A program made the position numbers and the translations under genes. The notes under the pieces were generated by a model. That model searched no databases, had not been told where the DNA came from, and saw only the letters and a program-made list of their open reading frames with translations. Source: Octopus bimaculoides (Eukaryota). From it: 48,509 nt of DNA. Positions 500 through 24,972 of this stretch are shown here, in pieces; positions within the stretch are counted from its first letter, which is position 1, and each line of letters starts with the position of its first letter. Location: assembly GCF_001194135.2 (NCBI RefSeq), contig NC_068998.1:50291995-50340503 (forward strand), in the 5' to 3' direction.

Positions 500-535
500 C
501 AGCTACAAGGAGACTGAGAAAATGACAGACTTTAT
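500..535 (-). pseudogene. Degenerate copy of the family signal-peptide exon 1
   Basis: Minus strand reads ATA AAG TCT GTC ATT TT CTC AGT CTC CTT GTA GCT G|gtaagt. It aligns to the 37-nt exon 1 of G1-G3 (restored reading MKSVIFL(S)LLVA-G) but has ATG>ATA and a 1-nt deletion (36 nt). The donor site is intact. Confidence 0.7.
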
Positions 536-606
536 ACTCGGTTGCATAAATATTTAATGTTCAAACATCACAAATTATAGCCGCAAAGATTTTCANNNNN
601 NNNNNC

Positions 607-688
607 GGCGGAATATGAACTCGGATCGTAACGGCAGACAAAATACCGCTAAGCATTTCGCCCGGGGTGCTAACGATTCTATCAGCTG
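607..688 (-). mobile_element. Octopus SINE family B, 5' part, truncated by gap
   Basis: Minus strand ctgatagaatcgttagcaccccgggcgaaatgcttagcggtattttgtctgccgttacgatccgagttcatattccgccg matches other copies in this window (e.g. 46200-46428). Confidence 0.75.
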
Positions 689-700
689 TGTGTATGTATG

Positions 701-753
<53 letters not shown>

Positions 754-947
754 GTTAGCATTTGGGCATCATATATAGTTAGAAATCTTTCTTGGGTTTA
801 AGAAACAATGTTTTTTTTTACATTATACTTATTTGTGAGCGTCGAAGGAATACATAAACGCGTCAAAGGTATACAAAGTCAAGTGTGACAGATAATAAAA
901 TATAATAATCAATATTAGGAGTAAGAATTTTACTCGTAAAAACTTAC

Positions 948-987
948 CAATAAGTACAAAGCAAAGAAATAGCACCGATTTCATCAT
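948..987 (-). CDS. G1 exon 1: signal peptide (M)MKSVLFLCFVLI-G of a secreted Cys-rich family paralog; remaining exons are presumably beyond the left edge
   Basis: ATG ATG AAA TCG GTG CTA TTT CTT TGC TTT GTA CTT ATT G|gtaagt. It is 37 nt from the second ATG to a phase-1 donor, the same length and phase as G2 and G3 exon 1. TATA box and E-box lie upstream. Confidence 0.8.
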
Positions 988-1057
988 TGTTGAGTAAGAA
1001 TTCGTATGATTAAATACCAAGCACAAGCACTAGTTTCTTATTTTGAGTAACTAAATC

Positions 1058-1091
1058 TTATATACGTAGAATATACTAGCGCAGGTGCTCA
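1058..1091 (-). promoter_or_regulatory. G1 core promoter: TATATAA box (1058-1064) and E-box TGAGCACCTG (1082-1091)
   Basis: TATATAAGA lies about 75 nt upstream of the ATG. The same arrangement occurs in G2 and G3. Confidence 0.7.
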
Positions 1092-1470
1092 TTCTCAGCA
1101 CCATTCAATAAAGCGCCGGGTCTTGACCATATATGTATTGGGTGAATACATTTTTCTATGGTTACAAATTTGTTTGCTTTCTACGTTGAATAAAATCGAC
1201 TATTTTTTCATCAATAACTTCTGACTCTTGTGTTGTAATATATTTATTATGCTGTTATAATTTTTTTTTTTAATTTTTTGTTTTTACTTTTGATAGACAG
1301 AAGTTTAGATCATTTTTCAATACATACGTTGGATGTCATACACGTGCTGTTAAATATGCGATTGGAAAAACATTTACATGAAATATTGGATACACATCAT
1401 GCTCATTATTATATAGTTAACATCAGATATATATATATGAGTGTGTGTGCGTGCATGTATGTGGGTATAT

Positions 1471-1745
1471 TGGCGTAGACATGGCTTTGTGTTAAGAAGG
1501 GAGATTCACTAAGACATAACTCCAGGTTCAGCACCACTCCTTGGCACCTTGGACAAGTGTTTTCTGCTATAACCTCGGACTTACCAACGACGGATATTGA
1601 AAGAATCCCGACGTACATATATACGTATATATTTGTGTGTGTGTGTGTGTGTGTGTGTACTTTGTGTCTGTGTTTGTCCGTTACCGCTTGACAATCGATG
1701 TTGAAAGGTTTGCATTTCCATAACTTAGCGGTTCAGCAAAAGAGC
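1471..1745 (+). mobile_element. Octopus tRNA-derived SINE family A (diverged), with internal TA/TG microsatellite
   Basis: Head ggcgtagacatggct...ggttcagcaccact..ggcaccttggacaagtgt and body cttgacaatcgatg...taacttagcggttcagcaaaagag are similar to the copies at 30186-30600 and 35480-35677. Confidence 0.7.
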
Positions 1746-2552
1746 TGCAAATGTTATTTTAACTACAATTAAATTATGACCATTTAATACGAATTATAAA
1801 CTTCTGATTGTTAATTGCTACTCAANNNNNNNNNNNNNNNNNNNNNNNNNNNNNNNNNNNNNNNNNNNNNNNNNNNNNNNNNNNNNNNNNNNNNNNNNNN
1901 NNNNNNNNNNNNNNNNNNNNNNNNNNNNNNNNNNNNNNNNNNNNNNNNNNNNNNNNNNNNNNNNNNNNNNNNNNNNNNNNNNNNNNNNNNNNNNNNNNNN
2001 NNNNNNNNNNNNNNNNNNNNNNNNNNNNNNNNNNNNNNNNNNNNNNNNTATATATATACATGTGTGTGTGTGTGTGTGTGTGCGTGCGTGTGCGTGTGTG
2101 CGTGTGTGTGTATACGTCTTCGGAAATAATGACGTCAGTACATCAGTGGCAAAACCGTTGATATATGACTTCATGGAACAGAAAAACAAAAACGAAATCT
2201 ATTATGTACGAAAGCTTTCAAAATACTTGTCATTAAAATCTACATATTCATTAATGTGTTTGCAATTTAATTCAACCTAAAATATTTATCAATTAGCTAA
2301 GGCAAAAGAAGTGATTTAATGAATAAATTACTCAACAATTGTAAGTAAAAACACGACGCATTTCTACAGACTCAACATAAACAAACTCATTAACGCTAAA
2401 ATCTCTGTGATAGATTTTATTAAAGGAATACGTATAACATTGAGTGATAGTATAATTTAATTTTCTCTCAATATATCTCCATTTCAATGGACACCGGTGA
2501 ATCAAAAGCTTAACACATTATATACTATCAATATCAAGAGGGAATATGTGAA

Positions 2553-2692
2553 AGCAATAATTTCAAGACATCCATTGCTTTGAAAATATTGTTGAGGCAA
2601 CAGGTACGTTTTCTCGATGTTAACCTCCATGGCAATAGTACTTGTTCTATTATATAAATATTCCGATTATAATTATCTAAATGGAGTAAGTG
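2553..2692 (+). mobile_element. Possible decayed Penelope-like reverse transcriptase fragment
   Basis: Translation SNNFKTSIALKILLRQQVRFLDVNLHGNSTCSI, then (frameshift) YKYSDYNYLNGVS. This resembles the PLE RT C-terminal pattern NxFxxxIxFT..FLDV..YRK..YL. Judged by eye only. Confidence 0.35.
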
Positions 2693-3244
2693 GAGCAGGA
2701 GCATACACGAAGACGGAAAGCGTCTCTGAAGAGGTCACAGATGTCTGACGAAAGATTTCCGGACAATGGAATGAGTTAAAATAAGAACAGTTATAAACGA
2801 GTGAAGAACGAATACATAGTGCGTGTGTTAATTTGGCAAAGAAATGACCAGCCCGAAATACAACAATATCTGTTTCAACACCCGGTTCCACAACAGGAAT
2901 CTTGCAAATTTATGAACCTAAATTAAAATGTTCTGTGTTGTGCAAAATCACTTATTGTCTTCATAAAATACTCAACCAATATGGTAACAAACGCTCAGTT
3001 GATATATATTTCTAGAAGCACATCACAATTAATACATTATTTCCCAAGACCAGTATAAACCAATGAGTTATGAATGGGCTACTGGCAATAAAATAATTCC
3101 AATCGCTTCCATTTCTTATTTCATGTAAATTTTCCACTGGCAAACATTTTCGTTACTTTTAATTTGATTTTGCAGTCTTGGTCAAAGGTTTGGACCGTTG
3201 TGACCAATTATATAATATTGTTTATTATTATCTCATTTATCAAT

Positions 3245-3420
3245 CCGGTGAGCTGGCTGAAACTTTAGTGCGGCGAACAAATTTCGTAGCGCTCTTTCGG
3301 CAGTCTAAACGTTCTTAAGTCAAATGCCACCGAAGCCACTTTCGCTTTTTAGCCTTTCTGAGTCAATAAAATATCTATTTGTGTAGCACTGGGGTTGATG
3401 TAATCGACTTATACCCTCGC
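3245..3420 (+). mobile_element. Octopus SINE family B (diverged)
   Basis: ggtgagctggctgaaactttagtgcggcgaacaaatttcgtagc...gtcaaatgccaccgaagccactttcgc...actggggttgatgtaatcgactta. Confidence 0.65.
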
Positions 3421-3839
3421 ACGAAATTTCATTCTGTGTGCCTCTGGTTGAAGGAATTAGAATTTCTATGAAATAACGCAATGACAGTTTTTTACCATTG
3501 TAATCTCTTCATCCCACATGCTAGTTCCTAATGTTTCTCTACTTTCTCATTTTCGTTAATATCAACTCACTTAATGTCGATATCAACTTCAATCTATCAG
3601 CTCACCTAACGTTCGTACCGCGTTTTTATAATTTCAAATGCAGAAAGACGTTTAACATCACAAGACACATGTTACCCGCTGTATCATGTCCTGTGTTATA
3701 TTCTTTCGTACTTCCCTACTGTACTGTCTTCAAAAATATCCAATGCTTTCACATTTCCATAAACTTTGCGTTTGTTGCTTGACTGAGATTTATCAGTCTT
3801 TCATTTCTATCACATTTTTTTAAATGCATTTTTTCTGAG

Positions 3840-3995
3840 CCACAATCATTTCCTCATTTCAGTCAGTTTGTATTTATGTCGCAGACACAACCAATGTTCT
3901 TCAACACGTAACAACTGTTTTTTATTATTTCACCATGAAGTCATTTTATCCTTTCTCAAAGCAAAACGACCGAAATCTTCCTAGGAACCCCTATT
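3840..3995 (+). mobile_element. Possible Tc1/mariner-type terminal fragment
   Basis: gaagtcattttatcctttctcaaagcaaaacgaccgaaatcttcctaggaacccctat resembles mariner 3' ends as recalled. No partner TIR was found. Confidence 0.3.
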
Positions 3996-5599
3996 TTGAA
4001 AACAATGATTTAATGGGGTGATGGGAATGAATAAGTTAGTATTTTACAAGCCTCTTCCGTATAGAATGTCTAATACTAAAGCCGAATTTCGTCTAAGCTA
4101 TCTGTAATGAAATGCTATAATGAACTGATTAAAATCAGTTGTAAGAGACATTGAGAAATACCTACAGGAAAACAATTAATGCCATTGATGTTTTTGTTTA
4201 CGCACTCCATCTGCTTTTGTTGTTAATGTTGATGTGTAGCTAACGCCGATCTTGAGCGACTAAATCTATAACCAAAAGATTTGCGATATTCCGTTTGTTT
4301 TGAAGATGGTGTTGCGTTCAACTAAATTAAAAGGATGCTCGTTTTGGAGTTAATTATACGTCTAAAAAACAACATAATCATACACACGAATTTATAATAT
4401 TCGATATTATCCATATTAAAATTGGCTATAACCCGGCACAAAAGTCATTATATGAAAACGAAATGGTGTGATAATATGAAACGTAGTTCAATCTTCTAAA
4501 AATCTGATATAAACGTATTGTGATGCAATCATAACCGCTGATTGAAAATAAGACCAAAATATAACTTTCACAGACTGAAATGCCTCTGGTTTTCTTGATG
4601 CTTTCAGCTGGAATGACACTCACCACCATCTGATATTTACTCTGATTTTATTTTAGTATGTCTGTAAGAGTTGTTATCTCGGGAGGTATATAGCTCTGAC
4701 TGGACTATGAAAGGTGTATGTTTTTCTTTCTTTAATACTCTCTCAATGGCGCTTACCGGTTTTATATACAATCGGGATATTCACAACAGCAAAAAATATA
4801 TCTGTCCGCTGCTTTCCATGTACGAGGTGACGATTTCTCCTCTAAGACGTAGGTACTTGTGTGTATACGTCATTGCAAAAGCTCAAAATGGCCGAAATGC
4901 ATGTGCCATTTTCGATGTTTGTTGCTGTCTGACATTTATTCTGTATTACATGTTGTCTAAAATGAATACTGCTGTAACTTTCCTCTCACCGTTATTTATG
5001 CTATAACATCGATACCTAGATTCCTATATTAAATCGTTATTGCTGTGTTACAGTGCGTGAGAGTTTTAATGTTAGTGGGTCGGTATCCGTTGTTAATTAA
5101 TATAAACTTCTTCAGAGTGATGTCCCTGTATCATTTGTTGCTTCTTACCCCGTCCCACAGGCCTTGTAACACTCGAGTATCTAAAAAATGATTTACTTCA
5201 ATGTCTGCGATTTGTAATACGCATCTATATGAAGAAGCATGAGGATCGCTTATGCATACTAGATTCATGAGTTGCATCTAAAGTGTACATTTACAGTGTG
5301 ACATCTTGTGTCACCAAATACTTAAATATATGTAACACATGAAATAAAGTAGTACCAATCTCAAATCCATGTTTCATATTCCACAGCACATCACGAATAG
5401 AGTTTGTAATATTTGCATATGTCTCCGACCGCCGATACGGATCATTTCGGGTGTATTGGAGAATAATGACCGGAATAGGTAAAAAGCTAACGAAATATCG
5501 ATATGCACCGTTTTTATTCAACGTAGGGGCGAGTTGCCTTTTATGGTGTGAGACATTAAATTTTCATTAATACTCGGCGTCGTAAAAAGATAGTTCCCA

Positions 5600-5796
5600 C
5601 CAGTGTTATCTAAGGGATGACACTTGTGGCGTGGCACTTGTGACGTCGCAACTCATTTCTACTGCTGAGTGAACTGGAGCAATGAGAAATAAAGTGCCTT
5701 GCTCAAGAACACAACACGCAGCCCGGTCCGGGATTCGAACTAAGAACATCATGATCGTAAGCAGGACACTCTAACCACGGAGCCATGCGCCTTCCC
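5600..5796 (-). mobile_element. tRNA-derived SINE family C with a V/Meta-SINE-like central domain
   Basis: Minus strand gggaaggcgcatggctccgtggttagagtg (box A) ... gttcgaatccc (box B), then gtgttcttgagcaaggcacttt...ctccagttcactcagc..aaatg. Confidence 0.7.
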
Positions 5797-6316
5797 ATGA
5801 TGGTATTCCCCAGATATTGGACGTATAAACAAAGCATACACGCTACGCATGTGTCATCGACAATGTTTACATTATTAAAACTGTCTTTATACAAAATATA
5901 ATTTTCTCTAACATAAGCCAGGGCGTGGCATGTCAGGGAATAGACTTTACGCTCTCTTCTTGCAGATATGTCTCCGACCGGCAATATGCTCCGTTTCAGG
6001 GCGAGTGGCATGTAATATCACTTTGACATAAGNNNNNNNNNNNNNNNNNNNNNNNNNNNNNNNNNNNNNNNNNNNNNNNNNNNNNNNNNNNNNNNNNNNN
6101 NNNNNNNNNNNNNNNNNNNNNNNNNNNNNNNNNNNNNNNNNNNNNNNNNNNNNNNNNNNNNNNNNNNNNNNNNNNNNNNNNNNNNNNNNNNNNTACATAT
6201 ATTTCTTCACTCGCTAATTACTGTTCTTATTTTACAAATTTTATTTCATTATTTTAAGATGCGTTAAATGTATATATATTTATTTGGCCAAGAAATGACC
6301 ATCCCGAAGCACACCA

Positions 6317-6318
<2 letters not shown>

Positions 6319-6376
<58 letters not shown>

Positions 6377-6500
6377 ATATATATGTATATATATATATAT
6401 AGATAGATAGATAAATAGATAGATAGATAGATAGATAGGTAGATAGATAGATAGATAGATAGATAGATATATAGATAGATAGATAAATAGATAGATAAGA
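6319..6500. repeat. Compound microsatellite (TA)n(TG)n(TAGA)n
   Basis: Directly visible. Confidence 0.95.
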
Positions 6501-6579
6501 AAGTCTATAGATATTTATGCAAGCATGTGTGTGTATATTAGGTGGACACCAAATTTATGGAAATTAATAATATAACACA

Positions 6580-6661
6580 TATAAAAAGAGAAATTGTTTT
6601 ATTTCTGTAATGGCTGATGATATCTTCCAGATTGAATATATTGGATTGATTCTAATAAGAT
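6580..6661 (-). other. G2 putative non-coding terminal (3' UTR) exon with poly(A) signal at 6598-6603
   Basis: Strong acceptor tatatttttctattcacag| at 6662. GAAATAAAACA occurs about 60 nt in, and the same 11-mer occurs in the G3 terminal exon. The 3' end is approximate. Confidence 0.5.
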
Positions 6662-7509
6662 CTGTGAATAGAAAAATATAATGTTTATTATAGTAGTAAT
6701 TATTGTTTTGTATCAAATATTAGATATCAAAACGAAAATCAGTTCGCAGGTGTTACACTGTAGACAATTGCAATATCATTTTTTTCACCGAAAATAAAAT
6801 AACTTGATACAATACAATAGTATATCGATATCCTTTCTAGCAACATATTTACAATAATATATACAAACCGACATCTTAGTATACAATTGTCTCTACTGTC
6901 CTTCGATAGACTTAAATCAGTGTATATTCATTTGGGATTTCCAAAGTGTTTTACATTGTTTTGTTTTTTTTTCAATTATATTACATGGAGGGTAGAACAA
7001 AAATCAGCAAAGCACATAACACATTTAGCAAGTAAGATTATATACTATCAATATATACGTTAAAAATGAAGACATGCGACAGATTACTTTTCAAATGTAA
7101 ATAATTATATGATGGCTTTACTGAAGATGTAAACGCATTGACAATGTGGAATAAATTTTATGGTACCTAATCTTCGTGCTATGTAACATTATTGATTTCT
7201 ATGTATCATTAGAAATTTAATGATCATCATTTTAACACTAAGATATTTTAAATATGTCATTTCGAATTATTAATTACATACGCCAAATGATTTGTGTGAG
7301 ACGTTGTCCTGGTATTACGTTTTCAACAGTCTGTTGTAAAGATACGCAATTATTTACCTTTATGACAGAATATAATCACATAAACTAGTCACGGTAACAC
7401 AATGCATTTTTATTTTACGTGATTTATGAAATATGGCTATAAAGCATAGATATTTAAAATCACATTCTAAATATTGATTTAATTTTTTTTTTTACAGGGC
7501 AAGCAAGAT

Positions 7510-7670
7510 CTGGGGAGGCGGAGAACCCATTATATCGAACCCAATGTTCAACAGGCAATTATTTTAGCAATCACGAACCTATGAAAATGAAAATCCACCT
7601 CAGCGGAATTCGAACAAAAACGGTAAAGACGGACAAAACTTCACAAACGCATTTTCCCCAGCTTTCCATC
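7510..7670 (-). mobile_element. Octopus SINE family B (diverged), in G2 intron 6
   Basis: tatcgaacccaatgttcaacaggcaattattttagc...cctcagcggaattcgaac..aacggtaaagacggac. Confidence 0.6.
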
Positions 7671-7797
7671 TATGTAGACAGCTGATACGTTATATTCGTA
7701 GACTTATTATAAATATAATGTAGAAACGAATATATGGCATTCAAGATGCAATTATTATTAATTCTCAAATACTACTTACTATTTTTGAAGAAACAAA

Positions 7798-7820
7798 TTA
7801 TGGTCTATACAAGACTCCAA
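7798..7820 (-). CDS. G2 exon 6 coding part: (I)GVLYRP-stop; the exon continues to a donor at 7780
   Basis: ttgtttttattttatttcag|TT GGA GTC TTG TAT AGA CCA TAA tttgtttcttcaaaaata|gtaagt. Phase 1 matches the upstream exon, and it parallels G3 exon 4. Confidence 0.7.
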
Positions 7821-8929
7821 CTGAAATAAAATAAAAACAATATATTTAGAACAACGTCGAATATATAATGAAATCTAATGTGAAAGCGAATAGGCCAATT
7901 TGTAGCTTCTACACTATTTTAAAATGATTATCTTATTCAATGTCATCACTCATATATCGTTATTACTGTATATAAGGAAGAGTCTACTAAATTTTACATA
8001 CTCATCAGGTAATCTAAAACTAATTATAGTGACAGAAAGAATGAAAATATCTATTGATGTGTGATTATCTTTTATTTGCTGTGCAAGCTTCACGATTATG
8101 TAGATATCTATACATAAATTGAAGCAAACACATAGTTGTTGCTATTCTCTATATTGATACCACATAAATATTAGCATATGTAGTATTTTTGTATCTCAGT
8201 TGGTGCAGTTCAATTTCCAATACCTGGATCTGGTTCTCAAGTTCTGTATCATTTGATCTTAGCATATTATAAATTTGTTGCATGTGTAATAAACAATACA
8301 GAACAGCGGCCACATTACTATCTATACTGTAGTAAATCATGTGAGATCGCTGTTGAAATACGTTCTGATTTCACCACTACGTCTTCTCGAAGTCCATCTT
8401 GGTCTCATTACTGCTTAACACATCCAGGTAAATAAAATGATTCAGTTTTTTTTTTCTGTTGCAGCTCCACCTCAAAATATTAGCACTTCTTCGTCGTACA
8501 ATTATCTCTAATTTGTCTTCCGTATAAGTTCGACAATCCACACAATTCATTTTAATTATTGGTACTCCGGGGACCTTATATTCTTTGAACTGCGAAAGCC
8601 CGATGTTTACTGCATGGATTTTGACTCTTTGTTTTCTCCAAGTAAAACTGCAGTCATCCTGGTTTTTGCTGCCATGGTGTAACAGCATTTTACCATTCCC
8701 TTGGATAGCATAGGTGACGTGCGGAGGTGAAAACATGGGTGACTGCTTCTCTTTAATATACAACTTTGCTTGGACTTGTGATTAGAAGAGGGACTTTCTA
8801 CGTGCAATCTCATAGACATTCATAGAGACAGAGATACACACCCACATACATATACTTAAAGGTATGTTTGTAGCTATACATATTCATAGGTTTATGCACG
8901 AACATTTTTCTGTGTTTTTTCCACACCAA

Positions 8930-9085
8930 TACTTGAGAACATTTGTTGGTTTGTTTATGTCTCCATAATACAGTGGAGCAGCAAAGGAGGTCAATATAAT
9001 AAGCACGAGTTTTTTAAAATAATACATGTCTCCGAATTGAGTTCTTCGACGCAAGCCTTCCAAAACATGCTGCAGCATGGTCATA
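8930..9085 (+). mobile_element. Highly diverged SINE family A body in G2 intron 5
   Basis: ttggtttgtttatgtctccataatacagtggagcagcaaaggagg...catgctgcagcatgg is homologous to 36885-37010 and to the family A 3' half. Confidence 0.55.
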
Positions 9086-9540
9086 TTTTAACGACGAAAC
9101 CAAGTACACGATAAATGATGAGAAATTAGAACATGACTCAACTCTGCACATCAAAGACCATTAGTTAATTTGGGGGTAAAATTACGAGTTTTGTTATCGG
9201 TGACATATAATTTAAAATTTTTTTTTTAAAAACTGCTTTCGTCTGCAATATATTTGTTACTCTTAACCTGATTAATGATTACAAACAAACATTCGGTCGG
9301 TCCGGACATCTTAATAATCTTCACATTGACAGAAAAATTACGACGGCAAAAGCCAGACATTGTAAGGGATGCAGCAATCGTTTAAAAAGTTATTTAAACA
9401 AACGCTTGAGGGAAGCTAAAGAACACGTCGGTACATTTTGTCCAGAGTTGTGTAGATTATAACATTTCACATTAAAATCATTGAATAATTATAGAAAAGT
9501 ATTAATAATGATGAATACATATAGAAATAATATATCTTAC

Positions 9541-9629
9541 TACTGCATTGTTTCTCAATTAGATCACGGAAGAAATCGTGGCATACTGTATTTTTCGGTT
9601 GCATGCAGCTACGAAACATGTGGAGACGA
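9541..9629 (-). CDS. G2 exon 5 (B2): RLHMFRSCMQPKNTVCHDFFRDLIEKQCS, second half of Cys module 2
   Basis: ttcttgttttccag|T CGT CTC CAC ATG...TGC AGT A|gtaag. 89 nt, phase 2 to 1, the same length as B1 and the G3 B exon. Confidence 0.9.
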
Positions 9630-10465
9630 CTGGAAAACAAGAATACGATAAAACAAATAACGAAACCAAAATATTTGATCTTTATTTTTTTAGATTCGTT
9701 CTCTGAGATCCGCTTACCAGGGAGAATGCTGGCATCATAATCTATAGCATCACCTATTTTTGTTCAAACCTATGTGGTATTGATAGTAATAAGTACTGCG
9801 GGTGAGAAGAGTCGGATGTTTTAATGCTAATCACTCAGCAGCTAACTACCTTGGAATAAATACCTTCTAGCGGCTATATTACTGTCATTATCTGTTTTAA
9901 ACACATAGGCTACGTTTCAAGTTCTACTCATATCAAGAAAATTTCAGTGCATTCGACTTTAAACATGAGTGAAACTCAAAGGATGTCATCGGATTTACTC
10001 CAAATCGTTGAGATCACCAAACCCGAACATGAGTTCAAAGGAACTTTAGAACCAGTAGATGTTATTTCAGCACTCAGCACCTATTAATTCTACAACACTC
10101 CAGTGAGAACTGCAATATAATTTTGCTCCTACTTCTAGGACTTTTATGCCCTTACGCAAACTGATATCATACAGAAGAAAAAAAAAGCAATACTATGACA
10201 TAGTGAATTTTCACTAAGGGCATTTCTTCCATATCATATGAATAAGAAGCTGTCGCAAATTTTGAGTTGCATTTCTGTTATGGAATTTAGATCGATCGAA
10301 AGCATATTTACGAGCGGTCAGATTTCAAATTAGGACCGTCGCTCAAATCTTCCTTAAAGGTACTATTTTTCTGGAATGAAAAATCAAATATTATATTATA
10401 TATTCGTTATATTAGAAATGATACATTTCTAAATCTCTCAGAGAGACTTAAGCAGTAGTGATGCG

Positions 10466-10622
10466 ATAAAGTAGTTGTATGATGTCAGCTTAACGTGACA
10501 GTCTCAATAAGGGAATCATATTGGCCGACAGGAAGCCGTACAGCTTCCTATGGCTAAATAGCAGTAGTATGATTCCCTTATTGGGACTGTCACATTAAGT
10601 TGACAACATACAACTAATTTAT
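10466..10622. repeat. Long inverted repeat / hairpin in G2 intron 4
   Basis: Arms 10472-10520 and 10568-10616 match at 45/49 nt. A nested inner stem AGGAAGC-cgtaca-GCTTCCT sits in the loop. Confidence 0.9.
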
Positions 10623-10654
10623 TCATTATATTGTTTTTCGTGAATGATACTTAC

Positions 10655-10757: not shown

Positions 10758-10861
10758 CTGTAAGTTTAAGAGTTAGGGTTTATTAAAAGACTTGTATTAC
10801 GAAAAATACCTTTCCAAATTTCTGAGTCATTAAAAATGCTGTATAATCATATGAATATGTA

Positions 10862-11202: not shown

Positions 11203-11247
<45 letters not shown>

Positions 11248-11769: not shown

Positions 11770-11894
11770 CTGACAATATAAAGAAAAGCGAGATGTTACA
11801 TTTTAAAGGAAATATTTAAACTGTCTGTGTATTTGACTTACGCTCTCAGCGCATCTGCCTCACTAGCTACGTATCGTACTGTCGACACACACAC

Positions 11895-11926
<32 letters not shown>

Positions 11927-12152
11927 NNNNNNNNNNNNNNNNNNNNNNNNNNNNNNNNNNNNNNNNNNNNNNNNNNNNNNNNNNNNNNNNNNNNNNNNNN
12001 NNNNNNNNNNNNNNNNNNNNNNNNNNNNNNNNNNNNNNNNNNNNNNNNNNNNNNNNNNNNNNNNNNNNNNNNNNNNNNNNNNNNNNNNNNNNNNNNNNNN
12101 NNNNNNNNNNNNNNNNNNNNNNNNNNNNNNNNNNNNNNNNNNNNNNNNNNNN

Positions 12153-12184
<32 letters not shown>

Positions 12185-12737
12185 TGTGTGTGAGAGAATA
12201 TTTATGCGCATGTTACTTCTTTGATGACGTCTAGTACTGAAAAGCTAAGTCGATTATAGTGTTCCAGCATTTCACTCACACTGGATTAATGTTGGTTATT
12301 TTTCCTGAAAATTGTCTGTGCAAATAATGCGGAAAATATTCAAGCATAAAATCATGCAACTGCTTAATCGAAAGCCAGTATCTATGCGTTTTCCTCTTCC
12401 ATATTTATAAACGTCGCCTTTATAATTTATGGCATATCATACGCAGAAATGCACAGATAAATATAAATATGTGTGTGTGTGTTTGTAAGTGTGCGGGCGT
12501 ACATGCGTGCGCATATGTGTGGTTTTATATTTATATGTCTATGACTTATCTTTTTGATTTGATAGTATTCAAGTCCTTGTATTTTTTTTGCTTGCGTTTT
12601 TAATAACAGATCCGAAATATGAAGTGAATTTTTTGCACATCACCCACGATGTTTCTCAACTCTACCGACCTTAAACGGTACAGAAAAAAATATTCCAAAT
12701 AATGGTTATAGTAGATTTGCTAATACATCAGACATAC

Positions 12738-12840: not shown

Positions 12841-12949
12841 CTAGAAGGCAAGTTAATTTACTTAGTTTTGAAATTCCTTAATAAAATGTAAACACCAAGC
12901 AAAACAATCTAAACATTTACACGCATTATAATGGACGCAAAATTAGGAC

Positions 12950-12998
<49 letters not shown>

Positions 12999-13893
12999 NN
13001 NNNNNNNNNNNNNNNNNNNNNNNNNNNNNNNNNNNNNNNNNNNNNNNNNNNNNNNNNNNNNNNNNNNNNNNNNNNNNNNNNNNNNNNNNNNNNNNNNNNN
13101 NNNNNNNNNNNNNNNNNNNNNNNNNNNNNNNNNNNNNNNNNNNNNNNNNNNNNNNNNNNNNNNNNNNNNNNNNNNNNNNNNNNNNNNNNNNNNNNNNNNN
13201 NNNNNNNNNNNNNNNNNNNNNNNNNNNNNNNNNNNNNNNNNNNNNNNNNNNNNNNNNNNNNNNNNNNNNNNNNNNNNNNNNNNNNNNNNNNNNNNNNNNN
13301 NNNNNNNNNNNNNNNNNNNNNNNNNNNNNNNNNNNNNNNNNNNNNNNNNNNNNNNNNNNNNNNNNNNNNNNNNNNNNNNNNNNNNNNNNNNNNNNNNNNN
13401 NNNNNNNNNNNNNNNNNNNNNNNNNNNNNNNNNNNNNNNNNNNNNNNNNNNNNNNNNNNNNNNNNNNNNNNNNNNNNNNNNNNNNNNNNNNNNNNNNNNN
13501 NNNNNNNNNNNNNNNNNNNNNNNNNNNNNNNNNNNNNNNNNNNNNNNNNNNNNNNNNNNNNNNNNNNNNNNNNNNNNNNNNNNNNNNNNNNNNNNNNNNN
13601 NNNTAAACATTTACACGCATTATAATGGACGCAAAATTAGGACGTTTATATATATATATACGTAAATCATTTTACATGCGTGTGGTGGTGTATGCATATG
13701 TGTGTGTGCGGAATGTGTTGCACTCCCTTAATAAGCCAAATGGAAACGAAATGATACTCTACTAAAAGTGCTTTGGGGAGGATCCGTTTAAGTCATCTTT
13801 CCATGTCATGCATATATCGAGAGCACATTTATGACTATAGATATACATGTGCGGGTGAGTGTGTATGAGTGTGTATGTGTATATATATATATG

Positions 13894-14410: not shown

Positions 14411-14447
14411 TTATATATATATTCATGAAATACTCAGCAGATGTTCA
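14411..14447 (-). promoter_or_regulatory. G2 core promoter: TATATAA (14411-14417) and E-box TGAACATCTG (14438-14447)
   Basis: TATATAAGAC lies about 70 nt upstream of the ATG, with an E-box at a position equivalent to G1 and G3. Confidence 0.7.
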
Positions 14448-15136: not shown

Positions 15137-15177
<41 letters not shown>

Positions 15178-16920: not shown

Positions 16921-17015
<95 letters not shown>

Positions 17016-17060
17016 TGTGCGTGTGTGTGTGTATGTGTGTGTGTGTGTGTGTGTATGTGT
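16921..17060. repeat. (TA)n(TG)n compound microsatellite
   Basis: Directly visible. Confidence 0.95.
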
Positions 17061-17339
17061 ATATGTACGTATATATTATACATAGATATATTTATATAGA
17101 ATTTCATTTATATATTTAGAAGCACACGTATGACTATGTGTTAATGCTCACCTACACGTGCATGAGAGCGTGTGCATGTTTTTATGAATATGTATATGCA
17201 TACGACAACCAAATATCATTGACAAATTATTATTTAATAATGCAACGGATGTTGTTTCTAATAAGAGATGAAACCATGTTAGGATTTTAATTTACTTGAT
17301 TGGAAGACAACACCAAAGAGAAACTACAAATCACAGGTT

Positions 17340-17424
17340 GACATAAAAATATGTTTTATTTCATTTTCCGATTACATTACATTAATTTCCATATACAAAA
17401 CAAGGTTTTACTTTGAAGGTAGAC
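17340..17424 (-). other. G3 putative non-coding terminal (3' UTR) exon with poly(A) signal at 17355-17360
   Basis: Strong acceptor cattattttcttgtatttttcag| at 17425. GAAATAAAACA occurs about 65 nt in, as in G2. The 3' end is approximate. Confidence 0.5.
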
Positions 17425-17489
17425 CTGAAAAATACAAGAAAATAATGTTATGTGAATATATGTATGCATGCATGTATATATGTATGTAC

Positions 17490-17567
17490 AGAGAGAGAGA
17501 CAGGCAGACAGACAGTCAGACTGACAGACAGACAGACAGACTGAGAGACAGACAGACAGACAGACAG

Positions 17568-17665
<98 letters not shown>
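17490..17665. repeat. (CAGA)n(TAGA)n microsatellite
   Basis: Directly visible. Confidence 0.95.
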
Positions 17666-18125
17666 GTGTATAATTGTGTGTGTGTGTTATATGGTGGATT
17701 TATTTGATGAATAATAACTATATATAAGGACAATGATTATTAGGTTTCACGATTTAGAACTTAACATTGTAATTCATATATAAACAGCGTTTTTATTTAT
17801 TCTTAGAGCCATTAATCGCGCAATATTCTAGCAGGAACGCATATTGCAGAGTATATAAAATTGTTTTACTGCTAGAGTCGTGCTACTGATTACATTGTAA
17901 TATGGCTGTGGGTATCTTCCGATGTCACTCAATATGAAAACATAGAGGAATACTTTTACTTCTTTAAATATATACAAAAAAGAAAAAGAAAAGATTTGGA
18001 ACTAAATCTGGTATTTGATTTCGCCACAACGAAAGACCGAAAGGTTCTAAATATTATCCCAAAACTAATGTTTATGCTATCATAGTGATACAATGGTTGT
18101 ACTTACATATTTACACAAGAGATAT

Positions 18126-18142
18126 TTAGTTGTAGCCAGCAA
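18126..18142 (-). CDS. G3 exon 4 coding part: (V)AGYN-stop; the exon continues to a donor at 18107
   Basis: ttttcctctttttcatttcag|TT GCT GGC TAC AAC TAA atatctcttgtgtaaatat|gtaagt. Phase 1, parallel to G2 exon 6. Confidence 0.72.
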
Positions 18143-18244
18143 CTGAAATGAAAAAGAGGAAAACATAATGAATTTGTAAGTTACAGAAATTAAAAACAAT
18201 CTGATCTTAGCAAGTATTCCTGTGTGATTAAGAAATTCGTTAAT

Positions 18245-18420
18245 CAATTACAACCGGTGCTGGTGGGTTAAGTCCCCGTATCTTAGCATTTCGATGGAAG
18301 AGACCGATAGACGTAAGAGGCTCAAAAAAAAAATAAGACTGTGCACTTGGATTTATACGTTCGACTAAGATGTTTCAAGATGGTGCCCCAATATGGCCTC
18401 ACTCTAATGAATGAAACACT
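18245..18420 (+). mobile_element. SINE family A 3' half (diverged), in G3 intron 3
   Basis: acaaccggtgctggtgggttaagtccccgtatcttagc...gagaccgatag...ttcgactaag...ggtgccccaatatggcc. Confidence 0.65.
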
Positions 18421-19498
18421 TTGGATACAAAAATGTAATATCTATAGTTACATAACAGCTTAAGAGATTAAGAGTAGGGATGTAATAGATTCCGATGTAG
18501 CTACAAGGCCAACAGAAAGCTTAAGCGCTTCTACGTTCACGCAGACTGAGCTGTAGGAGTAATAGACAACAATTAGTGTAATAATTCATCACAATAACAT
18601 TAACATAGTTATTGTGATTACATACTCAAAATTAGAAAGCAAGAAATTAAGCGCAATAATTTTGATTTCAAATTTTGTTAAGTGGATAAGATGATTCAGT
18701 TAATTCCAGAGTTTAATTTCTTCCTATTTTATCGACCCCACCCGCCAAAAATAAAAGGCAACTTGATGTTGGTAGAATTTGAAGTCAGAACGTGAATAGT
18801 CATGAGATGCCTCTAAACATCTATTAAATTTGGTAGATAATTATTAACATACCGGATGAAAAGGAAACAATCAATAGAATATAATAACGAGGTAATAAAA
18901 GAATAATATGAACGATAACACACAAGATATTTTTCTAATTGTTCCGTCTCTAGGGAATGGAAATATTCAAGAAATTATAAAAATGAGGGTCGTGTCTTAT
19001 AACCAATTACTGGATAATAATATAAATTGCAATATTGTTTACGAATAAATAGGATACGACATGCGTAGACCATTACATTTGAGAAAATCATACCATTAGT
19101 ATGATCATTATTCTGTCATTTGTTTGGTAATTAATTGTAAATAAATCAAATAGAAAATCGAAACCTGATTTAGAAACAATAAAATGCAAATTATGCAATG
19201 ATGGCTAAAGAATACAAATAAGCTAATTACTCGTGTTGTTGCATAAATACATAACTTGAACGTGGTAAAGGAGTAACGATGAAAGTAAATGCAGTAGAAC
19301 GGTAAGTATAAATGACGTTGGCATTTTTCCGCAGAGAATATATCATATATTATTAGTCAGACAGAAAGATTTGCTGCATGGTTTAAAGAGAGAATTATGT
19401 GTTATTTTTTGTAGACATTTCAGTCAACCATACATTCATACATACACACATACATCATACAATCATATATACATACATTCACAGACATATATAATGTA

Positions 19499-19553
<55 letters not shown>

Positions 19554-21199
19554 AACATATGCATATACATACACACATAGGTATGTATATGTATATATGC
19601 GTGTAAGTGTGTGCGTGTGTGTGTATGTGTATATGTGTGTCTTTGCTTATGTTTACATGTGTATGCAATATAAAATGAACAATGAAAAGGCAACACAAAA
19701 AAGCAATTTTAGGAAAGATGGTGTTAATCTAATGTTTGAATAGGAAGAATTTGTCTTCCCAGACAGACAGAAACTATACACAACAGTAATCACAAATACA
19801 CACAAATACGTGTATGTGTGTGTGTGTCTTTAAGTATGCGCTTTATTTCTCTGACAAAGCGAAACTTAGTAATAGTTTGGCAATCGCACAAGTGATATAT
19901 TGGTGTGGCGGGGAGAATACACAATATAATTTCATGTGCATATATATATAATATGCTGTATAAACACTGAATAGACACTGAGTAAGAAGAATATATTTTT
20001 TTACAAAAGAAAGTGATCGAAATAAAACAAGACGCCATTACAGATGCATAATGATGTCATAAGAATCCCAAAGCAGGTAAGAAACATTTGTAAGGAGTTA
20101 AACTTTTCTCAGTACTACGAGGTTGTTTGATATAAAGTTATTATGGAAAATTGCAGAGAGTGTCTCCTCTGCTCCGATCATGTTATTAAGATAGTTTTTT
20201 TCTTTTAATTCTCTTAGCAAATGCGTGCAGTAACTAGTAAATTACAGTAGTGTTTCGGACAGCTTTCAAAAATAATCTTTTGAATAATACTGGAAGATAT
20301 ATTTATTTATGTCAACAGCAGTTCATTGGAGATTTACTGTAGTAATACATCATTATCGTTTTCATTGGACATTTAATAATAAATAATCTAGTCGGATACC
20401 AAAGGATACTGAATGATGCCACATCTAATATAGGGAGATCAGACAAAGATGATGTACTGTCCACACAATAAAATATTAAGATCTCAGGAAGCAGCGTTTC
20501 TTTAAATTATTTATCTTTGTTAATACTGATTATAGCACATGGTGTAGTGGTTACAGTTTTGAGGGTTAACATCCGTAATGTCAAGAGAATATGATACGTT
20601 CAGTGTTAAACAGATACTAAGTTTTGCTATTGATCAAGGTACTGCAATTACTGTTGATTCAAACTACATAGCTGAATATGACGAGTAGAAATATACTGAC
20701 ACGGACGCTCAGTCTCCATGTTACATCCTCGATGTTCTGCTAGCTTTGAGTGAGAGCGACGTAATGAACTAATCAAATTTTAGGATTAATTTATTACATT
20801 GAGTCGAGTGCTCGGATGGTATTTTTTTTTTCACAACCTGTAAAAACGAAAGTGAAAGTGGTTTAACTTAGCACATACATACCAGTCCTATGCTGGTACT
20901 TTATGTTAGGATGAAAGGTAATGTTGACTTAAATCCGGTTTTAAATAAGAAAGTGAAGAACCAAGAGAAATGGCGTTAGCAATTTGTTCGACGCCCTAAC
21001 GAATTTGCCAGGCCGTCGCCGCAAGGATTTCATAAATTTGCTCAACGCCAGCAATATAGTGCGGTGTGGGGGACTATATTCGATCACGTCGGATAGTGTG
21101 TTCAGCTGCTGTTTATCTTATCGAAAAACAAATTAGACGTCAGCAGAAATTGAAGTATGAAAGTAAAGAACCGACGGCGTTAGTAAATAAAGTTCTTAC

Positions 21200-21288
21200 C
21201 GCTACATTCCATTTCCATAACATCATTGAAGTATCTTTGGCATCCTGCGTCTTTAGGTTTCATGCAGGAGCGGAACATGTGCAGACGA
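21200..21288 (-). CDS. G3 exon 3 (B): RLHMFRSCMKPKDAGCQRYFNDVMEMECS
   Basis: ataatttcttcatttatag|T CGT CTG CAC ATG...TGT AGC G|gtaag. 89 nt, phase 2 to 1, with 17/29 aa identical to G2 B2. Confidence 0.9.
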
Positions 21289-21560
21289 CTATAAATGAAG
21301 AAATTATCATGTTATTACATTTTGAAGTGTTTCTGTATAATGTATTTCAACAGTGAATCTTGTTTTAATATTGCAATTTCATTTCAGCAACTTTCATTAT
21401 ATTCTTTCCTAGATTATTTATTCATAAATAGTCATAGATGTCAGTTTCTATAAACAATCGGATTTTTTGACTGATATATAAACCACGTCTACGCATTATT
21501 CCTTTACGAATCTCTTACATATTTATCTCTCTCTACTCACTTTCATACTAATATATATCT

Positions 21561-21701
21561 TATTTACATTTGACGGATATTTGTCCTCATCTTGTTTGTT
21601 GTTAACACAACGTTTCGGCTGATATACCCTCCAATCTTCAACAGGTGTCTTGGGGAAATTTCGAACCTGGGTTCTCATTCCTGAGGTATTTTTCAATGTT
21701 G

Positions 21702-21740
<39 letters not shown>

Positions 21741-21813
21741 TCACTGCCTGGACGCGAACTCGGAATCTTGGGGTTAGTAGCCCGCGCTCTTAGCCACTGC
21801 GCCATATGCCCGT
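21561..21813 (-). mobile_element. tRNA-derived SINE family D with (AAT)n spacer and Penelope-like 3' tail
   Basis: Minus head acgggcatatggcgcagtggctaagagcgcgggctactaaccccaagattccgagttcgcgtcc (boxes A and B); tail cctgttgaagattggagggtatatcagccgaaacgttgtg. Confidence 0.7.
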
Positions 21814-23337
21814 AATATATACCTTGTATCTTAATATTCTTTTATACGAGGACATTTTTATCGACATTTACTTTGCCATGAACATGCAGTGTAGTGCTTG
21901 TGTTCTTATCTTATGTTAAATTTTCATCGGTAGTTACATTGTATCAACATGGGATGTGGCGTTACTTAAGACAGTATAGCTTCGATAGCCATACTTTCGT
22001 GATAAACACCTGGCTATGTGCTATATTACATTTTCGAGACGTCCATTCTCTAACACATGCCGAAAACTATTCAAATACACTGATGTTATAGACAAAGAGA
22101 AATTACATAAGAATGAAGAACTACCAGAGATACTGGGGTACAGGTGTGCTTGACGTACCCTAGGTAACCCATGTTGGTTTTAACTTCTTCAGATGCCGGA
22201 ATGTACTAACATGAAATTGCGGCTCCCGAATTGCTTCTTGGGTAACCTGCGACGCAGGTAGAGATTATAATTAGCACTATAATGTGAATGTTTTTGTTTG
22301 TAATATTACTTAACCGGAAATTTATCACAAACACAGGGCATCCATGATCATGTTATCTTGCAAACTCCTGATCGAATTTGATACAGTGACAATCAGTCAT
22401 TGCCTTAAATCGTTTTTGAAAAATGTTTTCTCTGGAAGAATGTTAAGTACGATGAAGCGAAATTATATAAGCAATCTTGGTGATATAACAAATCTCAAAT
22501 AACGCTAATTGGATATTTATATATCCAAATAAAATGGAAAATTATCCAAAATATAATGTAGGGACAAGAAGCGGAAACAAATTTTATTATAATCTTCTGA
22601 ATGATTATAAACTTGAGGATATATGCATAACAAAATTCCAAACTAATGACAAATATACCAGTGTATGCAAAATATCGTTAGCAGTAAATGTACACGTAAT
22701 ATTTAGAGTAACGTCCATACTATGGAAGGCACACAACAAAAGAAAACCGTATCAAAAGCGGACAACAGATTTGTAAACCATTGTGAAACTGAGATTGCGA
22801 AGAAATAATAATACAAATAATATATTCATAGAAAATATCTAGAGATAAATGACGTGTGGATTTTATATTAAAATCAAACTTACCGACATGTCTGGATTTT
22901 AGTACTAGGATTAGGGAAGGTGCTCATGGCATCCAGACAGATTTTCTTGGCTTTGTCGGTACATTGGTGGGACAAAGCAGAACCTTAAATTAAAAATGTG
23001 TAGACTTCAGTTAGTTAATTTTTTACTTATAAACTTGTAGTAAAATAATACACCATACTTAAAAATTGCGCGTAAAATGTATTTCTTAATGTTAAGAATA
23101 TATTTCATTTTAATCCTGATCTTGAAGGTTAATCCGCGATTTATCTGTAGCAATTTATACTAAATTATCTGTTTTAATCATATATACGTCACGTGCCCGT
23201 AATATATGCCTTGTATCTTAATATTCTTTTATACGAGGACATTTTTATCGACATTTACTTTGCCATGAAAATGCAATGTAGTGCTTGAGTTCTTATCTTA
23301 TATTAAATTATCATCGGTAGTTACATTGTATCAACAT
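21807..23337 (+). repeat. 144-bp direct repeat pair (21807-21950 and 23194-23337) flanking G3 exon 2
   Basis: Ungapped comparison gives about 6 mismatches in 144 nt. Confidence 0.9.
22884..22983 (-). CDS. G3 exon 2 (A): (G)SALSHQCTDKAKKICLDAMSTFPNPSTKIQTC(R)
   Basis: cacatttttaatttaag|GT TCT GCT...ACA TGT CG|gtaagt. 100 nt, phase 1 to 2, with the same Cys spacing as the G2 A exons. Confidence 0.9.
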
Positions 23338-23799
23338 TGTATCTCATTTATGCTGCACTGCCACTCTCATTTCAGGAAACATGCAGCACACAAGATCGCA
23401 AGGCTGAATGTTTGAGAGACGCTTCAATAGCCAACATTTGGACCATAATCCACCTTTACAGACATCAAGTAAAGAAATAGTAAAATAGTTTTCATGACTC
23501 GTATGCCTCTTAAAAATCACATCACTACATAAATATTTCCAACTAATTTCGTTTATATTGTACTCTAACAAACTATGTACAGGCTGATTAATGTTGCGTG
23601 AGCCCTCCATTGAAAAAAATATGTCTCCTTCAATGCAAAACATTGGAAGTCGGTATTAACGGAAGATCAGAAATATTGTCTAATTAAGACCACGAATAAA
23701 AATTCAATGTTTAAAACCTTCAGAATAATCTCTCAGCGTAAACATACGCTGAGATCCAAAATTTTCCGACAAGTTATGCGAGAGCCTATATATATATTC

Positions 23800-23980
23800 T
23801 TTCATTATTTTATTATTTTGTTTCAGTAATTTCACTGTGGCCATGCTGAAGCACCGTCTTTAGTCGAACAAATTAAACGCAGTATATATTCTTTGTAAGC
23901 CTAGTAATTATTCTATCGGTTCTCTTTTGACGAACTGCTAGTTTACGTAGACGTACACACACCAGCATCCGTTGTCAACT
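23800..23980 (-). mobile_element. SINE family A 3' half, in G3 intron 1
   Basis: Reverse complement of the 35480-35677 copy (ggccatgctgaagcaccgtctttagtcga...aagcctagta.ttattctatcggt...acaccagcatccgttgtcaa). Confidence 0.8.
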
Positions 23981-24680
23981 TAGCACACTGCCACTCCTAT
24001 ATATATATTGAATGAACGATTGGTTGTGGTGATTAATACAGTGTCCAAAGGGTGTCAACAAAAGAAATGGGATAAGGATAGAAAGGACGAATGAGTGAAA
24101 CATTGGTGAGCAGAGTTTGCAAGAAAGCAGCACCGGTTAGTAAGATATGCTATTATTGTCGCGGCGGAGAAGACAGAGAAGGGGAACAGATAGAATCCAT
24201 GGGGTACAGGAACGGAGGCGCATCTATTATTACATTTACGCTAATCAGTCGGTTGTTACTTTTCTAAATGCAGTCCAAAACATCCCTTTTAGCAGCAGTT
24301 ATAATTTTTGATTTTATAGCTTGCCTCAAACATATGGAGTTTCAGAAACATAAAACGCTTATTTGACTGTGCATACGCATGCACAAACATACACGCATTT
24401 AATTTTGCATAATATATAACAGGACATAGGTGTGTGTGTGTGAGCATACATATACATAATTATATATATATATATATATNNNNNNNNNNNNNNNNNNNNN
24501 NNNNNNNNNNNNNNNNNNNNNNNNNNNNNNNNNNNNNNNNNNNNNNNNNNNNNNNNNNNNNNNNNNNNNNNNNNNNNNNNNNNNNNNNNNNNNNNNNNNN
24601 NNNNNNNNNNNNNNNNNNNNNNNNNNNNNNNNNNNNNNNNNNNNNNNNNNNNNNNNNNNNNNNNNNNNNNNNNNNNNNNN

Positions 24681-24728
<48 letters not shown>

Positions 24729-24935
24729 TGTGTGTGTGTATCTATCAATCTATCTATCTATCTCTCGCTCTCTCTTTCTCTCTCTCTCACACACACTCTC
24801 TCTTAGTGTTTGTGTAAGTGTGCACAGGTGGGTCCCTTTAGAAATATGTTAATAGTCAAATTGATGTTAAGGAATTCGACTCCAAGCTGCGATTCAATTT
24901 CGAACGAAAGGAAATAACTTTGTCAGATAACTCAC

Positions 24936-24972
24936 CGACAATAAGGAGACAGAGAAATACGACAAATTTCAT
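24936..24972 (-). CDS. G3 exon 1: signal peptide MKFVVFLCLLIV-G. The full G3 product is an 80-aa secreted protein with one 6-Cys module
   Basis: ATG AAA TTT GTC GTA TTT CTC TGT CTC CTT ATT GTC G|gtgagt, 37 nt. The joined CDS of 37+100+89+17=243 nt is open throughout. Confidence 0.88.

Follow-up and report, generated by a model that had tools for sequence, protein, structure and literature searches.

The closest described relatives of the genes reported here are two octopus proteins of 147 aa, each composed of two six-cysteine modules. The protein NP2 of Octopus kaurna (UniProt B6Z1Y9, GenBank ACJ22658.1) shares its accession batch with the S1 peptidases ACJ22640 and ACJ22645 of this species, a batch that reportedly stems from the survey of posterior venom gland cDNAs by Fry et al. 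2009; NP2 is assigned to the venom gland on the basis of this origin and of the shared batch. The second protein, OvSSCR_21 of Octopus vulgaris, is one of the proteins that Fingerhut et al. 2018 listed as short, secreted, and cysteine-rich, and corresponds to proteinGroup 511 of the posterior salivary gland, which was detected by mass spectrometry with three unique peptides (posterior error probability, PEP, 6.3e-9) and scored "Signal peptide Y" by SignalP (PMC7693380, Tables S3 and S4). The best nr match of proteinGroup 511 is XP_014779193.1 (LOC106875520), with 83% identity over 147 aa (PMC7693380). Here, we describe a stretch of 48,509 nucleotides of Octopus bimaculoides DNA (contig NC_068998.1, positions 50,291,995 to 50,340,503), referred to as the window, that carries three genes of this type, G3, G2, and G1, positioned head to tail in this order on the minus strand. 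The product of G2 is 100% identical to XP_014779193.1, the "uncharacterized protein LOC106875520" of RefSeq. OvSSCR_21 is its ortholog, NP2 is 62% identical to it (E 6.8e-50), and both have the same cysteine spacing as G2. The entries of NP2 and OvSSCR_21 are bare sequences, to which the window adds the tandem G3-G2-G1 order, the modular exons, and the single-module paralog G3. Octopus saliva and venom hold many short cysteine-rich proteins, and the locus places one family of them on solid genomic ground. We propose that G3, G2, and G1 probably form a cluster of Octopus-restricted short secreted cysteine-rich proteins of the salivary or venom gland, likely to function as non-enzymatic binding modules.

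The first-pass annotation of the window had described three 37-nt start exons, three A exons of 100-103 nt, and three B exons of 89 nt with canonical GT-AG sites. Because it contained no exon coordinates, the motifs quoted in it were searched in all six frames of the window, and start exons were sought by scanning for an ATG followed by 34 nt and GT[AG] with a hydrophobic translation. All the described exons were recovered with the lengths, phases, and splice sites given. The motifs DAM[GS]T[YF]P and RLxMxRSC each occur at exactly three sites, all on the minus strand, as are all the exons of the three genes. The gene models are composed of the following elements, with E values from a profile hidden Markov model (HMM) of the module family:

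24972-24936, minus strand: G3 start exon, coding part, 37 nt, encoding MKFVVFLCLLIV plus 1 nt, which covers the N-terminal portion of the signal peptide; its donor is GTGAGT
22983-22884, minus strand: G3 A exon, 100 nt, phase 1 to 2; HMM E 2.3e-9
21288-21200, minus strand: G3 B exon, 89 nt, phase 2 to 1; HMM E 5.8e-11
18142-18126, minus strand: G3 stop exon, coding part, ending in VAGYN and the stop codon; TTTCAG followed by TT GCT GGC TAC AAC TAA
14340-14304, minus strand: G2 start exon, coding part, 37 nt, encoding MKSIVFLCFALF plus 1 nt
12840-12738, minus strand: G2 A exon of module 1, 103 nt; HMM E 2.5e-10
11769-11681, minus strand: G2 B exon of module 1, 89 nt; HMM E 6.5e-10
10757-10655, minus strand: G2 A exon of module 2, 103 nt; HMM E 7.8e-9
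9629-9541, minus strand: G2 B exon of module 2, 89 nt; HMM E 1.7e-11
7820-7798, minus strand: G2 stop exon, coding part, ending in IGVLYRP and the stop codon; TTTCAG followed by TT GGA GTC ... TAA
984-948, minus strand: G1 start exon, coding part, 37 nt, encoding MKSVLFLCFVLI plus 1 nt

G3 and G2 are complete in the window. The stop exons close the previously proposed open frames into an 80-aa product with a single module (G3) and a 147-aa product with two modules (G2). G1 is represented by its start exon, which spans 987-948 (M-MKSVLFLCFVLI plus 1 nt) if an upstream in-frame ATG is used; its A, B, and stop exons are located beyond the window start. As a correction to the earlier description, one of the three modules in the window belongs to G3 and two to G2, and none to G1. 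All three share the spacing C-x7-C-x16-C-x8-C-x7-C-x11-C together with DAM[GS]T[YF]P and RLxMxRSCM, as had been claimed. In G3, the A exon encodes the end of the signal peptide followed by C1-x7-C2-x16-C3, including DAMSTFP, and the B exon encodes RLHMFRSCM followed by C4-x7-C5-x11-C6. Every internal exon begins after a polypyrimidine-AG acceptor and ends at a donor of the GT[AG]AG type, with GTAAG or GTATG at the A and B exons. The start exon runs from phase 0 to 1, the A exon from 1 to 2, and the B exon from 2 to 1; an A+B pair therefore starts and ends in phase 1.

When every stop-to-stop fragment of the window was scanned in all six frames with the family HMM, exactly these six A and B exons were matched, with E values of 2e-11 to 8e-9. 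The next-best match in the window reached only E 0.048, and this clear separation from the noise places the exon set far beyond chance. The E 0.048 match, an A-exon-like fragment at 4845-4985 on the minus strand, was rejected for its wrong cysteine spacing. In the 25-48.5 kb half of the window, the family HMM and scans for open reading frames (ORFs) detected neither a module exon nor a convincing long ORF. The exons of G3, G2, and G1 are missing from the ORF track because they are 34 codons long or shorter.

Chromosome CM046618.1 (GCA_001194135.2, about 50.29-50.32 Mb) matches window positions 1-24340 with 0 mismatches and contains the same gaps. The genes had been called hidden, which is correct for G3: its exact product was not found among about 15 billion proteins, and the current chromosome annotation has no gene called at G3 or G1. 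Therefore, G3 is unannotated in O. bimaculoides. The description does not apply to G2, which is LOC106875520, or to G1, the start exon of which encodes the N-terminus of UniRef entry A0A0L8GPE1 (P0005, 83 aa). The A and B exons of G1 lie behind a 1306-nt gap (25890-26402 of chromosome stretch L001) and encode A0A0L8GPE1 exactly.

The O. vulgaris orthologs of G3 and G2 are located on OX597831.1 at 15.37-15.41 Mb, in the same order and on the same strand. The G3 ortholog is annotated as CAI9735826.1 (P0004) and is 88% identical to G3; its start-exon peptide is identical, and its C-terminus reads VADYN instead of VAGYN. The G2 ortholog (P0002) shares 84% identity with G2. Judging by the consecutive accessions CAI9735826, -828, and -829, the G1 ortholog and a three-module relative come next in O. 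vulgaris, in agreement with the tandem arrangement proposed for the family. According to the Nei-Gojobori method, the dN/dS between O. bimaculoides and O. vulgaris is 0.36 for G2 (dS 0.24) and 0.17 for G3 (dS 0.35), as expected for protein-coding genes under purifying selection. Judged from these sequence comparisons, G1-G3 are real genes with intact orthologs subject to purifying selection.

Each of the three genes is preceded by a core promoter:

25053-25082, minus strand: G3 core promoter, with E-box CATCTG at 25082-25077 and TATA box TATATAAG at 25060-25053
14414-14443, minus strand: G2 core promoter, with E-box CATCTG at 14443-14438 and TATA box at 14421-14414
1057-1087, minus strand: G1 core promoter, with E-box CACCTG at 1087-1082 and TATA box TATATAAG at 1064-1057

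In all three paralogs and in both O. vulgaris orthologs, the ATG is preceded by a TATA box at a distance of 77-88 nt and by a CAYCTG E-box at 100-110 nt; in G3, these distances are 88 and 110 nt. The E-box, in the form TGAnCAYCTG, is positioned about 22 nt upstream of the TATATAAG-type TATA box in these five promoters; in O. vulgaris, both elements lie upstream of position 10001 of the stretches L002 and L003. The separate, conserved E-box and TATA box of every gene argue that G3, G2, and G1 are independent transcription units and not parts of one long gene. The opposite arrangement, in which their exons belong to a single multi-module transcript, would be permitted by the B-to-A junctions, which are phase-compatible across the genes (both phase 1), and relatives with up to eight modules exist. 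We nevertheless consider a single transcript very improbable, because every unit also has its own ATG, signal peptide, and stop exon, and the 147-aa product has been recovered as an O. kaurna cDNA, an O. vulgaris Trinity transcript, and a RefSeq model. Moreover, the O. vulgaris annotation contains separate models of 80, 147, and 83 aa. CAYCTG E-boxes are sites of basic helix-loop-helix (bHLH) factors, and the common E-box/TATA element of the separately transcribed genes could be a gland-specific control element of the cluster. A GTAAGT donor-like site is located 18 nt after the stop codon of G2 (about 7772-7798) and 19 nt after that of G3 (about 18100-18126), and is conserved in both O. vulgaris orthologs (L002 24291-24315, L003 17176-17200). 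Because of this conservation, the 3' untranslated region may be spliced, with a further non-coding exon downstream.

Beyond the signal peptide and one or two modules, the proteins encoded by G1-G3, which are 80-147 aa long in total, have just a tail of 5-9 residues. Their N-termini are hydrophobic, with small residues at positions -3 and -1 of the putative cleavage sites (ALS/HQC, VLS/DKK, and ALS/SRC). The tails are short and polar, and none is hydrophobic. These features, and the signal-peptide-positive O. vulgaris ortholog (PMC7693380), support the earlier view that the products are secreted and lack a transmembrane segment or a glycosylphosphatidylinositol (GPI) tail. The mature products are predicted to have masses of about 7 kDa (G1 and G3) and 15 kDa (G2), and to be devoid of a membrane anchor.

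The fold of the module was predicted using AlphaFold2 on an alignment of 33 family modules, as a single-sequence AlphaFold model of G2 reached a pLDDT of only 39 and was unusable. Module 2 of G2 is modelled as a three-helix bundle formed by helices 7-22, 29-43, and 48-61 (pLDDT 89.7, pTM 0.77). The six cysteines are placed pairwise on the three helices, and presumably form three disulfides that staple each module, with the pairing deduced from the sequence. A Foldseek comparison of the module model with the PDB gave no match at E<=0.001, and G2 and G3 had no Pfam, NCBI-style, or PDB sequence match.

The extent of the family was determined in an exhaustive HMMER search with the module profile against 1.84 billion representative proteins (E<=1e-3). 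The search returned 15 matches, every genuine one of them from Octopus (bimaculoides, vulgaris, or sinensis); the O. kaurna member, NP2, was found in a separate homolog search. The stick-insect protein P0011 (2474 aa) was discarded as spurious, since only many partial repeats of 3 bits match the profile. On the evidence of these searches, the module family is restricted to Octopus, and the lineage specificity put forward in the first-pass annotation stands.

The wider family, which includes LOC128248155 with eight modules, LOC128249887, LOC128249882/3, and A0A0L8GPX5, is built of the same module with the spacing C-x7-C-x16-C-x8-C-x(6-8)-C-x11-C. The spacing 7-16-8-(6-8)-11 is kept in all 33 family modules, and individual members contain 1, 2, 3, 4, or 8 of them. 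The relatives share the signal peptide and the position of the C3/C4 intron with G1-G3, but are only 20-30% identical to module 2 of G2 (the first row of the alignment). Most of them carry YP..PD..YC.RL where G1-G3 have DAM[GS]T[YF]P. Whereas the tails of G1-G3 are polar, most relatives end in a hydrophobic tail of 12-20 residues that follows small residues and is probably a GPI-attachment signal. By their sequence motifs, G1-G3 are a distinct subgroup of the DAM[GS]T[YF]P / RLxMxRSCM type. Many family members are encoded on the same chromosome as the window. Two tandem single-module relatives, one of which is LOC128249882 (P0013), are located about 350 kb away at CM046618.1 49.93-49.96 Mb (stretch L004, 3770-5808 and 11623-13817); both keep the intron at the A/B position, between C3 and C4. 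Because of these tandem relatives, we regard the family as an extended cluster on this chromosome.

The arrangement of exons suggests how the cluster may have developed. Each of the three genes has its own E-box and TATA box, a 37-nt start exon carrying most of the signal peptide, one or two A+B modules, and a tiny stop exon. The phase-1/phase-1 A+B unit would have permitted in-frame duplication of modules; the two-module G2 and the relatives with up to eight modules can be explained by the unit starting and ending in phase 1. The exon-phase design would thus account for the changes in module number. G1-G3 may have arisen by tail loss from neighboring, probably GPI-anchored surface paralogs, which would tie the gland proteins to a wider family of probable surface proteins that is likewise confined to Octopus.

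Public names of family members are inconsistent: G1 is labelled as a CHCH/Cx9C mitochondrial import protein and its relative P0008 as GDNF/GAS1, and neither label is reproducible. If the UniRef names of A0A0L8GPE1 and P0008 were right, G1 would be a mitochondrial intermembrane-space CHCH/Cx9C protein, or the family would be GDNF/GAS1-like (GFR-alpha-like). Both assignments are almost certainly wrong, since neither CHCH/CX9C nor GDNF is matched by P0005, P0008, or any relative in Pfam scans at E<=10, and the family profile does not match any GFR-alpha or GAS1 chain of the PDB even at E<=10. Furthermore, the x7/x16/x8/x7/x11 spacings are not those of a twin Cx9C, and the N-terminal signal peptides are of the endoplasmic reticulum type. 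The earlier statement that the proteins could not be assigned to a named family goes too far, as the labels NP2 and OvSSCR_21 do exist, although they are uncharacterised ones.

The only recurrent similarity of the family outside Octopus is to the N-terminal domain of RGM proteins (RGM_N, Pfam PF06535; RGMA/B/C, for example PDB 4UHZ, 4BQ6, and 6Z3M), which is likewise a small six-cysteine, three-helix domain. RGM_N is matched by 16 of the 33 modules at E<=1, with a best E of 1.3e-4, and no other Pfam family is matched by more than two. Two relatives, P0007 (37.9 bits) and P0009 (29.1 bits), pass the curated gathering cutoff of PF06535 (24.2 bits). Among PDB sequences, the family profile matches only the N-domains of RGMB and RGMC (E 0.044-0.27), along the pattern D..FC..L..Y..C......C; the matched entries are RGMB-BMP2, RGMB-GDF5, and RGMB-neogenin complexes. 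The comparison with RGMA and RGMB in hhalign yielded a P of 4.5e-4 and a probability of 33%. The core D-x2-[FY]-C-x2-L-x2-[YF]-x2-C-x7-C is shared by the RGM N-domain and the Octopus modules, with identical C-x8-C-x7-C spacing. However, the outer cysteines differ, as RGM has C-x4-C-x22-C...C-x21-C, and the Octopus modules are tandemly repeated, whereas RGM_N is not. RGMs are GPI-anchored. Unlike them, G1-G3 have no GPI anchor, RGM_C/vWD-like domain, or GDPH autocleavage site. Among weaker matches, Thioredoxin_9 (E 0.0013-0.15, below cutoff, at the junction between modules) and NPR2, DUF1397, and other Pfam families were non-recurrent and were judged to be chance matches.

Remote homology of the wider family to RGM_N is plausible on these sequence similarities. 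Several results weigh against extending it to the genes in the window. The score of G2 against PF06535 is 7.5 bits (E 6.4), and G3, G1, and the orthologs have no match. The similarity to RGM_N is confined to the central C3-C5 stretch. In Foldseek, the module model aligns with RGMB (6z3m_O) at a TM of 0.45/0.44 and an rmsd of 4.7 Å, with E 3.3 and rank 4, which is not significant. Since their own RGM_N scores are negligible, G1-G3 are not filed as members of RGM_N. A strong match to a well-characterised family, which had been set beforehand as an outcome that would refute the annotation, was not obtained, and the weak RGM_N similarity is the only one of its kind.

The resemblance to RGM_N raises the option that the secreted modules are functional RGM-N-like traps for ligands of the TGF-beta/BMP family or for other cystine-knot ligands, either of the prey or of the octopus itself, in the way that BMP2 and GDF5 are bound by the RGM N-domain. 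Such traps would fit the recurrence of RGM_N as the sole outside similarity, the common C-x8-C-x7-C core with its flanking D, aromatic, L, and Y/F positions, the six cysteines in a three-helix bundle, the GPI-signal-like tails of relatives, and the presence of BMP2 and GDF5 complexes of RGMB among the PDB matches. Yet this marginal similarity extends over only about 24-32 residues and is at its weakest in G1-G3. The spacings of the helix 1 and helix 3 cysteines are unlike those of RGM, the structural match is not significant, and an RGM_C domain is lacking, so that we consider a ligand-trap function quite unlikely. It is similarly doubtful that G1-G3 retain RGM-like binding of growth-factor ligands. 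With as little confidence, G1-G3 could be viewed as anchorless secreted offshoots of an Octopus-specific, RGM-N-like, originally GPI-anchored domain expansion that were recruited into saliva or venom; if this were true, a BMP co-receptor fold would serve as a soluble trap or mimic of growth-factor-like or receptor targets in prey. For the gland proteins of the cluster, we favor a more general mode of action, in which each module would be a rigid disulfide-stapled scaffold acting by binding and not by catalysis. We suggest the non-enzymatic binding role because the fold has no catalytic features and its sole outside resemblance is to the ligand-binding RGM N-domain.

The proposal that the proteins are components of the posterior salivary gland, the first of several candidates in the first-pass annotation, is supported by mass spectrometry, which detected the G2 ortholog in the gland of O. 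vulgaris, and by the 62% identical homolog NP2 of O. kaurna. We infer that expression in the posterior salivary gland extends to the O. bimaculoides genes and that their products are released in saliva or venom. After cleavage of the signal peptide, the proteins would be secreted from the gland into one of these fluids. Several points count against a role in venom. The gland expression of the O. bimaculoides genes is extrapolated from their orthologs in O. vulgaris and O. kaurna, and the O. vulgaris protein evidence comes from gland tissue and consists of just 3 peptides. The dN/dS values are well below 1, unlike those of an arms-race toxin, though coleoid venom proteins are generally under negative selection. 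Proteins of this kind are described as minor venom-related components of "unknown function" (PMC7693380). The row labelled "NP2" in the same study (group 673) best matches a different gene, LOC106867730, which makes this label ambiguous. Searches of main-text literature for LOC106875520, B6Z1Y9, and OvSSCR found nothing beyond PMC7693380. A cephalopod venom preprint of 2026 deals with SE-cephalotoxin and has no bearing on these proteins.

Alternatively, G1-G3 might be general secreted proteins with epithelial, mucus, immune or antimicrobial, or developmental signalling functions in many tissues, and their detection in the gland would be incidental. The many apparently membrane-anchored members of the wider family, which are unlikely venom components, agree with such functions, as do the purifying selection (dN/dS 0.17-0.36) and the mildly basic character of G3 and G1, with computed pI values of 8.9 and 8.2, respectively. 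The study that lists the G2 ortholog was itself a search for antimicrobial candidates (PMC7693380). However, gland-derived sequences were recovered independently in two species, as the NP2 cDNA of O. kaurna and in the posterior salivary gland proteome of O. vulgaris. In addition, the proteins carry a modest net charge, and G2, with a pI of 6.2, is acidic to neutral; both features are atypical of cationic antimicrobial peptides. We therefore regard a general secreted function as unlikely, although less so than a ligand trap, and favor the assignment of the cluster to the salivary or venom gland.

The family is already catalogued in RefSeq, UniProt, and proteomics lists, though uncharacterised, and the genes are real but only modestly new. 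The analysis overturns nothing, as the proteins had been listed as uncharacterised gland components. The new elements are the gene model of G3 in O. bimaculoides, the organization of the exons into modules, the promoter motif common to the genes, the predicted fold, the Octopus-only extent of the family, and the faint link to RGM_N.

The assembly of the gene region is interrupted by six gaps, none of which is inside or abuts an exon:

24480-24680: gap in G3 intron 1
12999-13603: gap in G2 intron 1
11927-12152: gap in G2 intron 2
6033-6193: intergenic gap between G2 and G1
1826-2048: intergenic gap between G2 and G1
596-605: gap in G1 intron 1

The reading frames are independent of the lengths of the gaps, because no gap touches an exon and each exon has its own splice sites. 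The orthologous loci of O. vulgaris contain 0 N and no extra module, and have GT-AG at every junction. Their coding exons have identical lengths in the same order, 37/103/89/103/89/23 for G2 and 37/100/89/17 for G3. Since these gap-free loci agree in exon counts and lengths, the gaps in the window do not conceal any exon. The spliced G2 product corresponds to the RefSeq protein residue for residue. Many gaps of the window are edged by TA, TG, or GATA microsatellites, for example at 1778-2187, 11845-12250, 12908-13110, and 24390-24730, and because of these borders we interpret the gaps as unassembled simple repeats. The 25-48.5 kb part of the window consists mostly of microsatellites and gaps, with long trinucleotide arrays at 40.05-40.67 kb (40050-40670).

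Two other types of repeats were observed in the window. A 156-nt direct repeat, the copies of which are 93% identical (21800-21955 and 23187-23342), is present in both introns flanking the G3 A exon and could represent a transposon pair or the remains of a local duplication. The other repeat is short (about 100-115 nt) and interspersed, with 62-80% identity between copies, and occurs at 578-690, 45090-45202, and 46315-46427, and also at 7536-7638 as compared with 45053-45155. ORFs over two of its copies give similar peptides, KVDL.GI.TQNV...TILPAR, and the repeat is probably a SINE or another mobile-element remnant.

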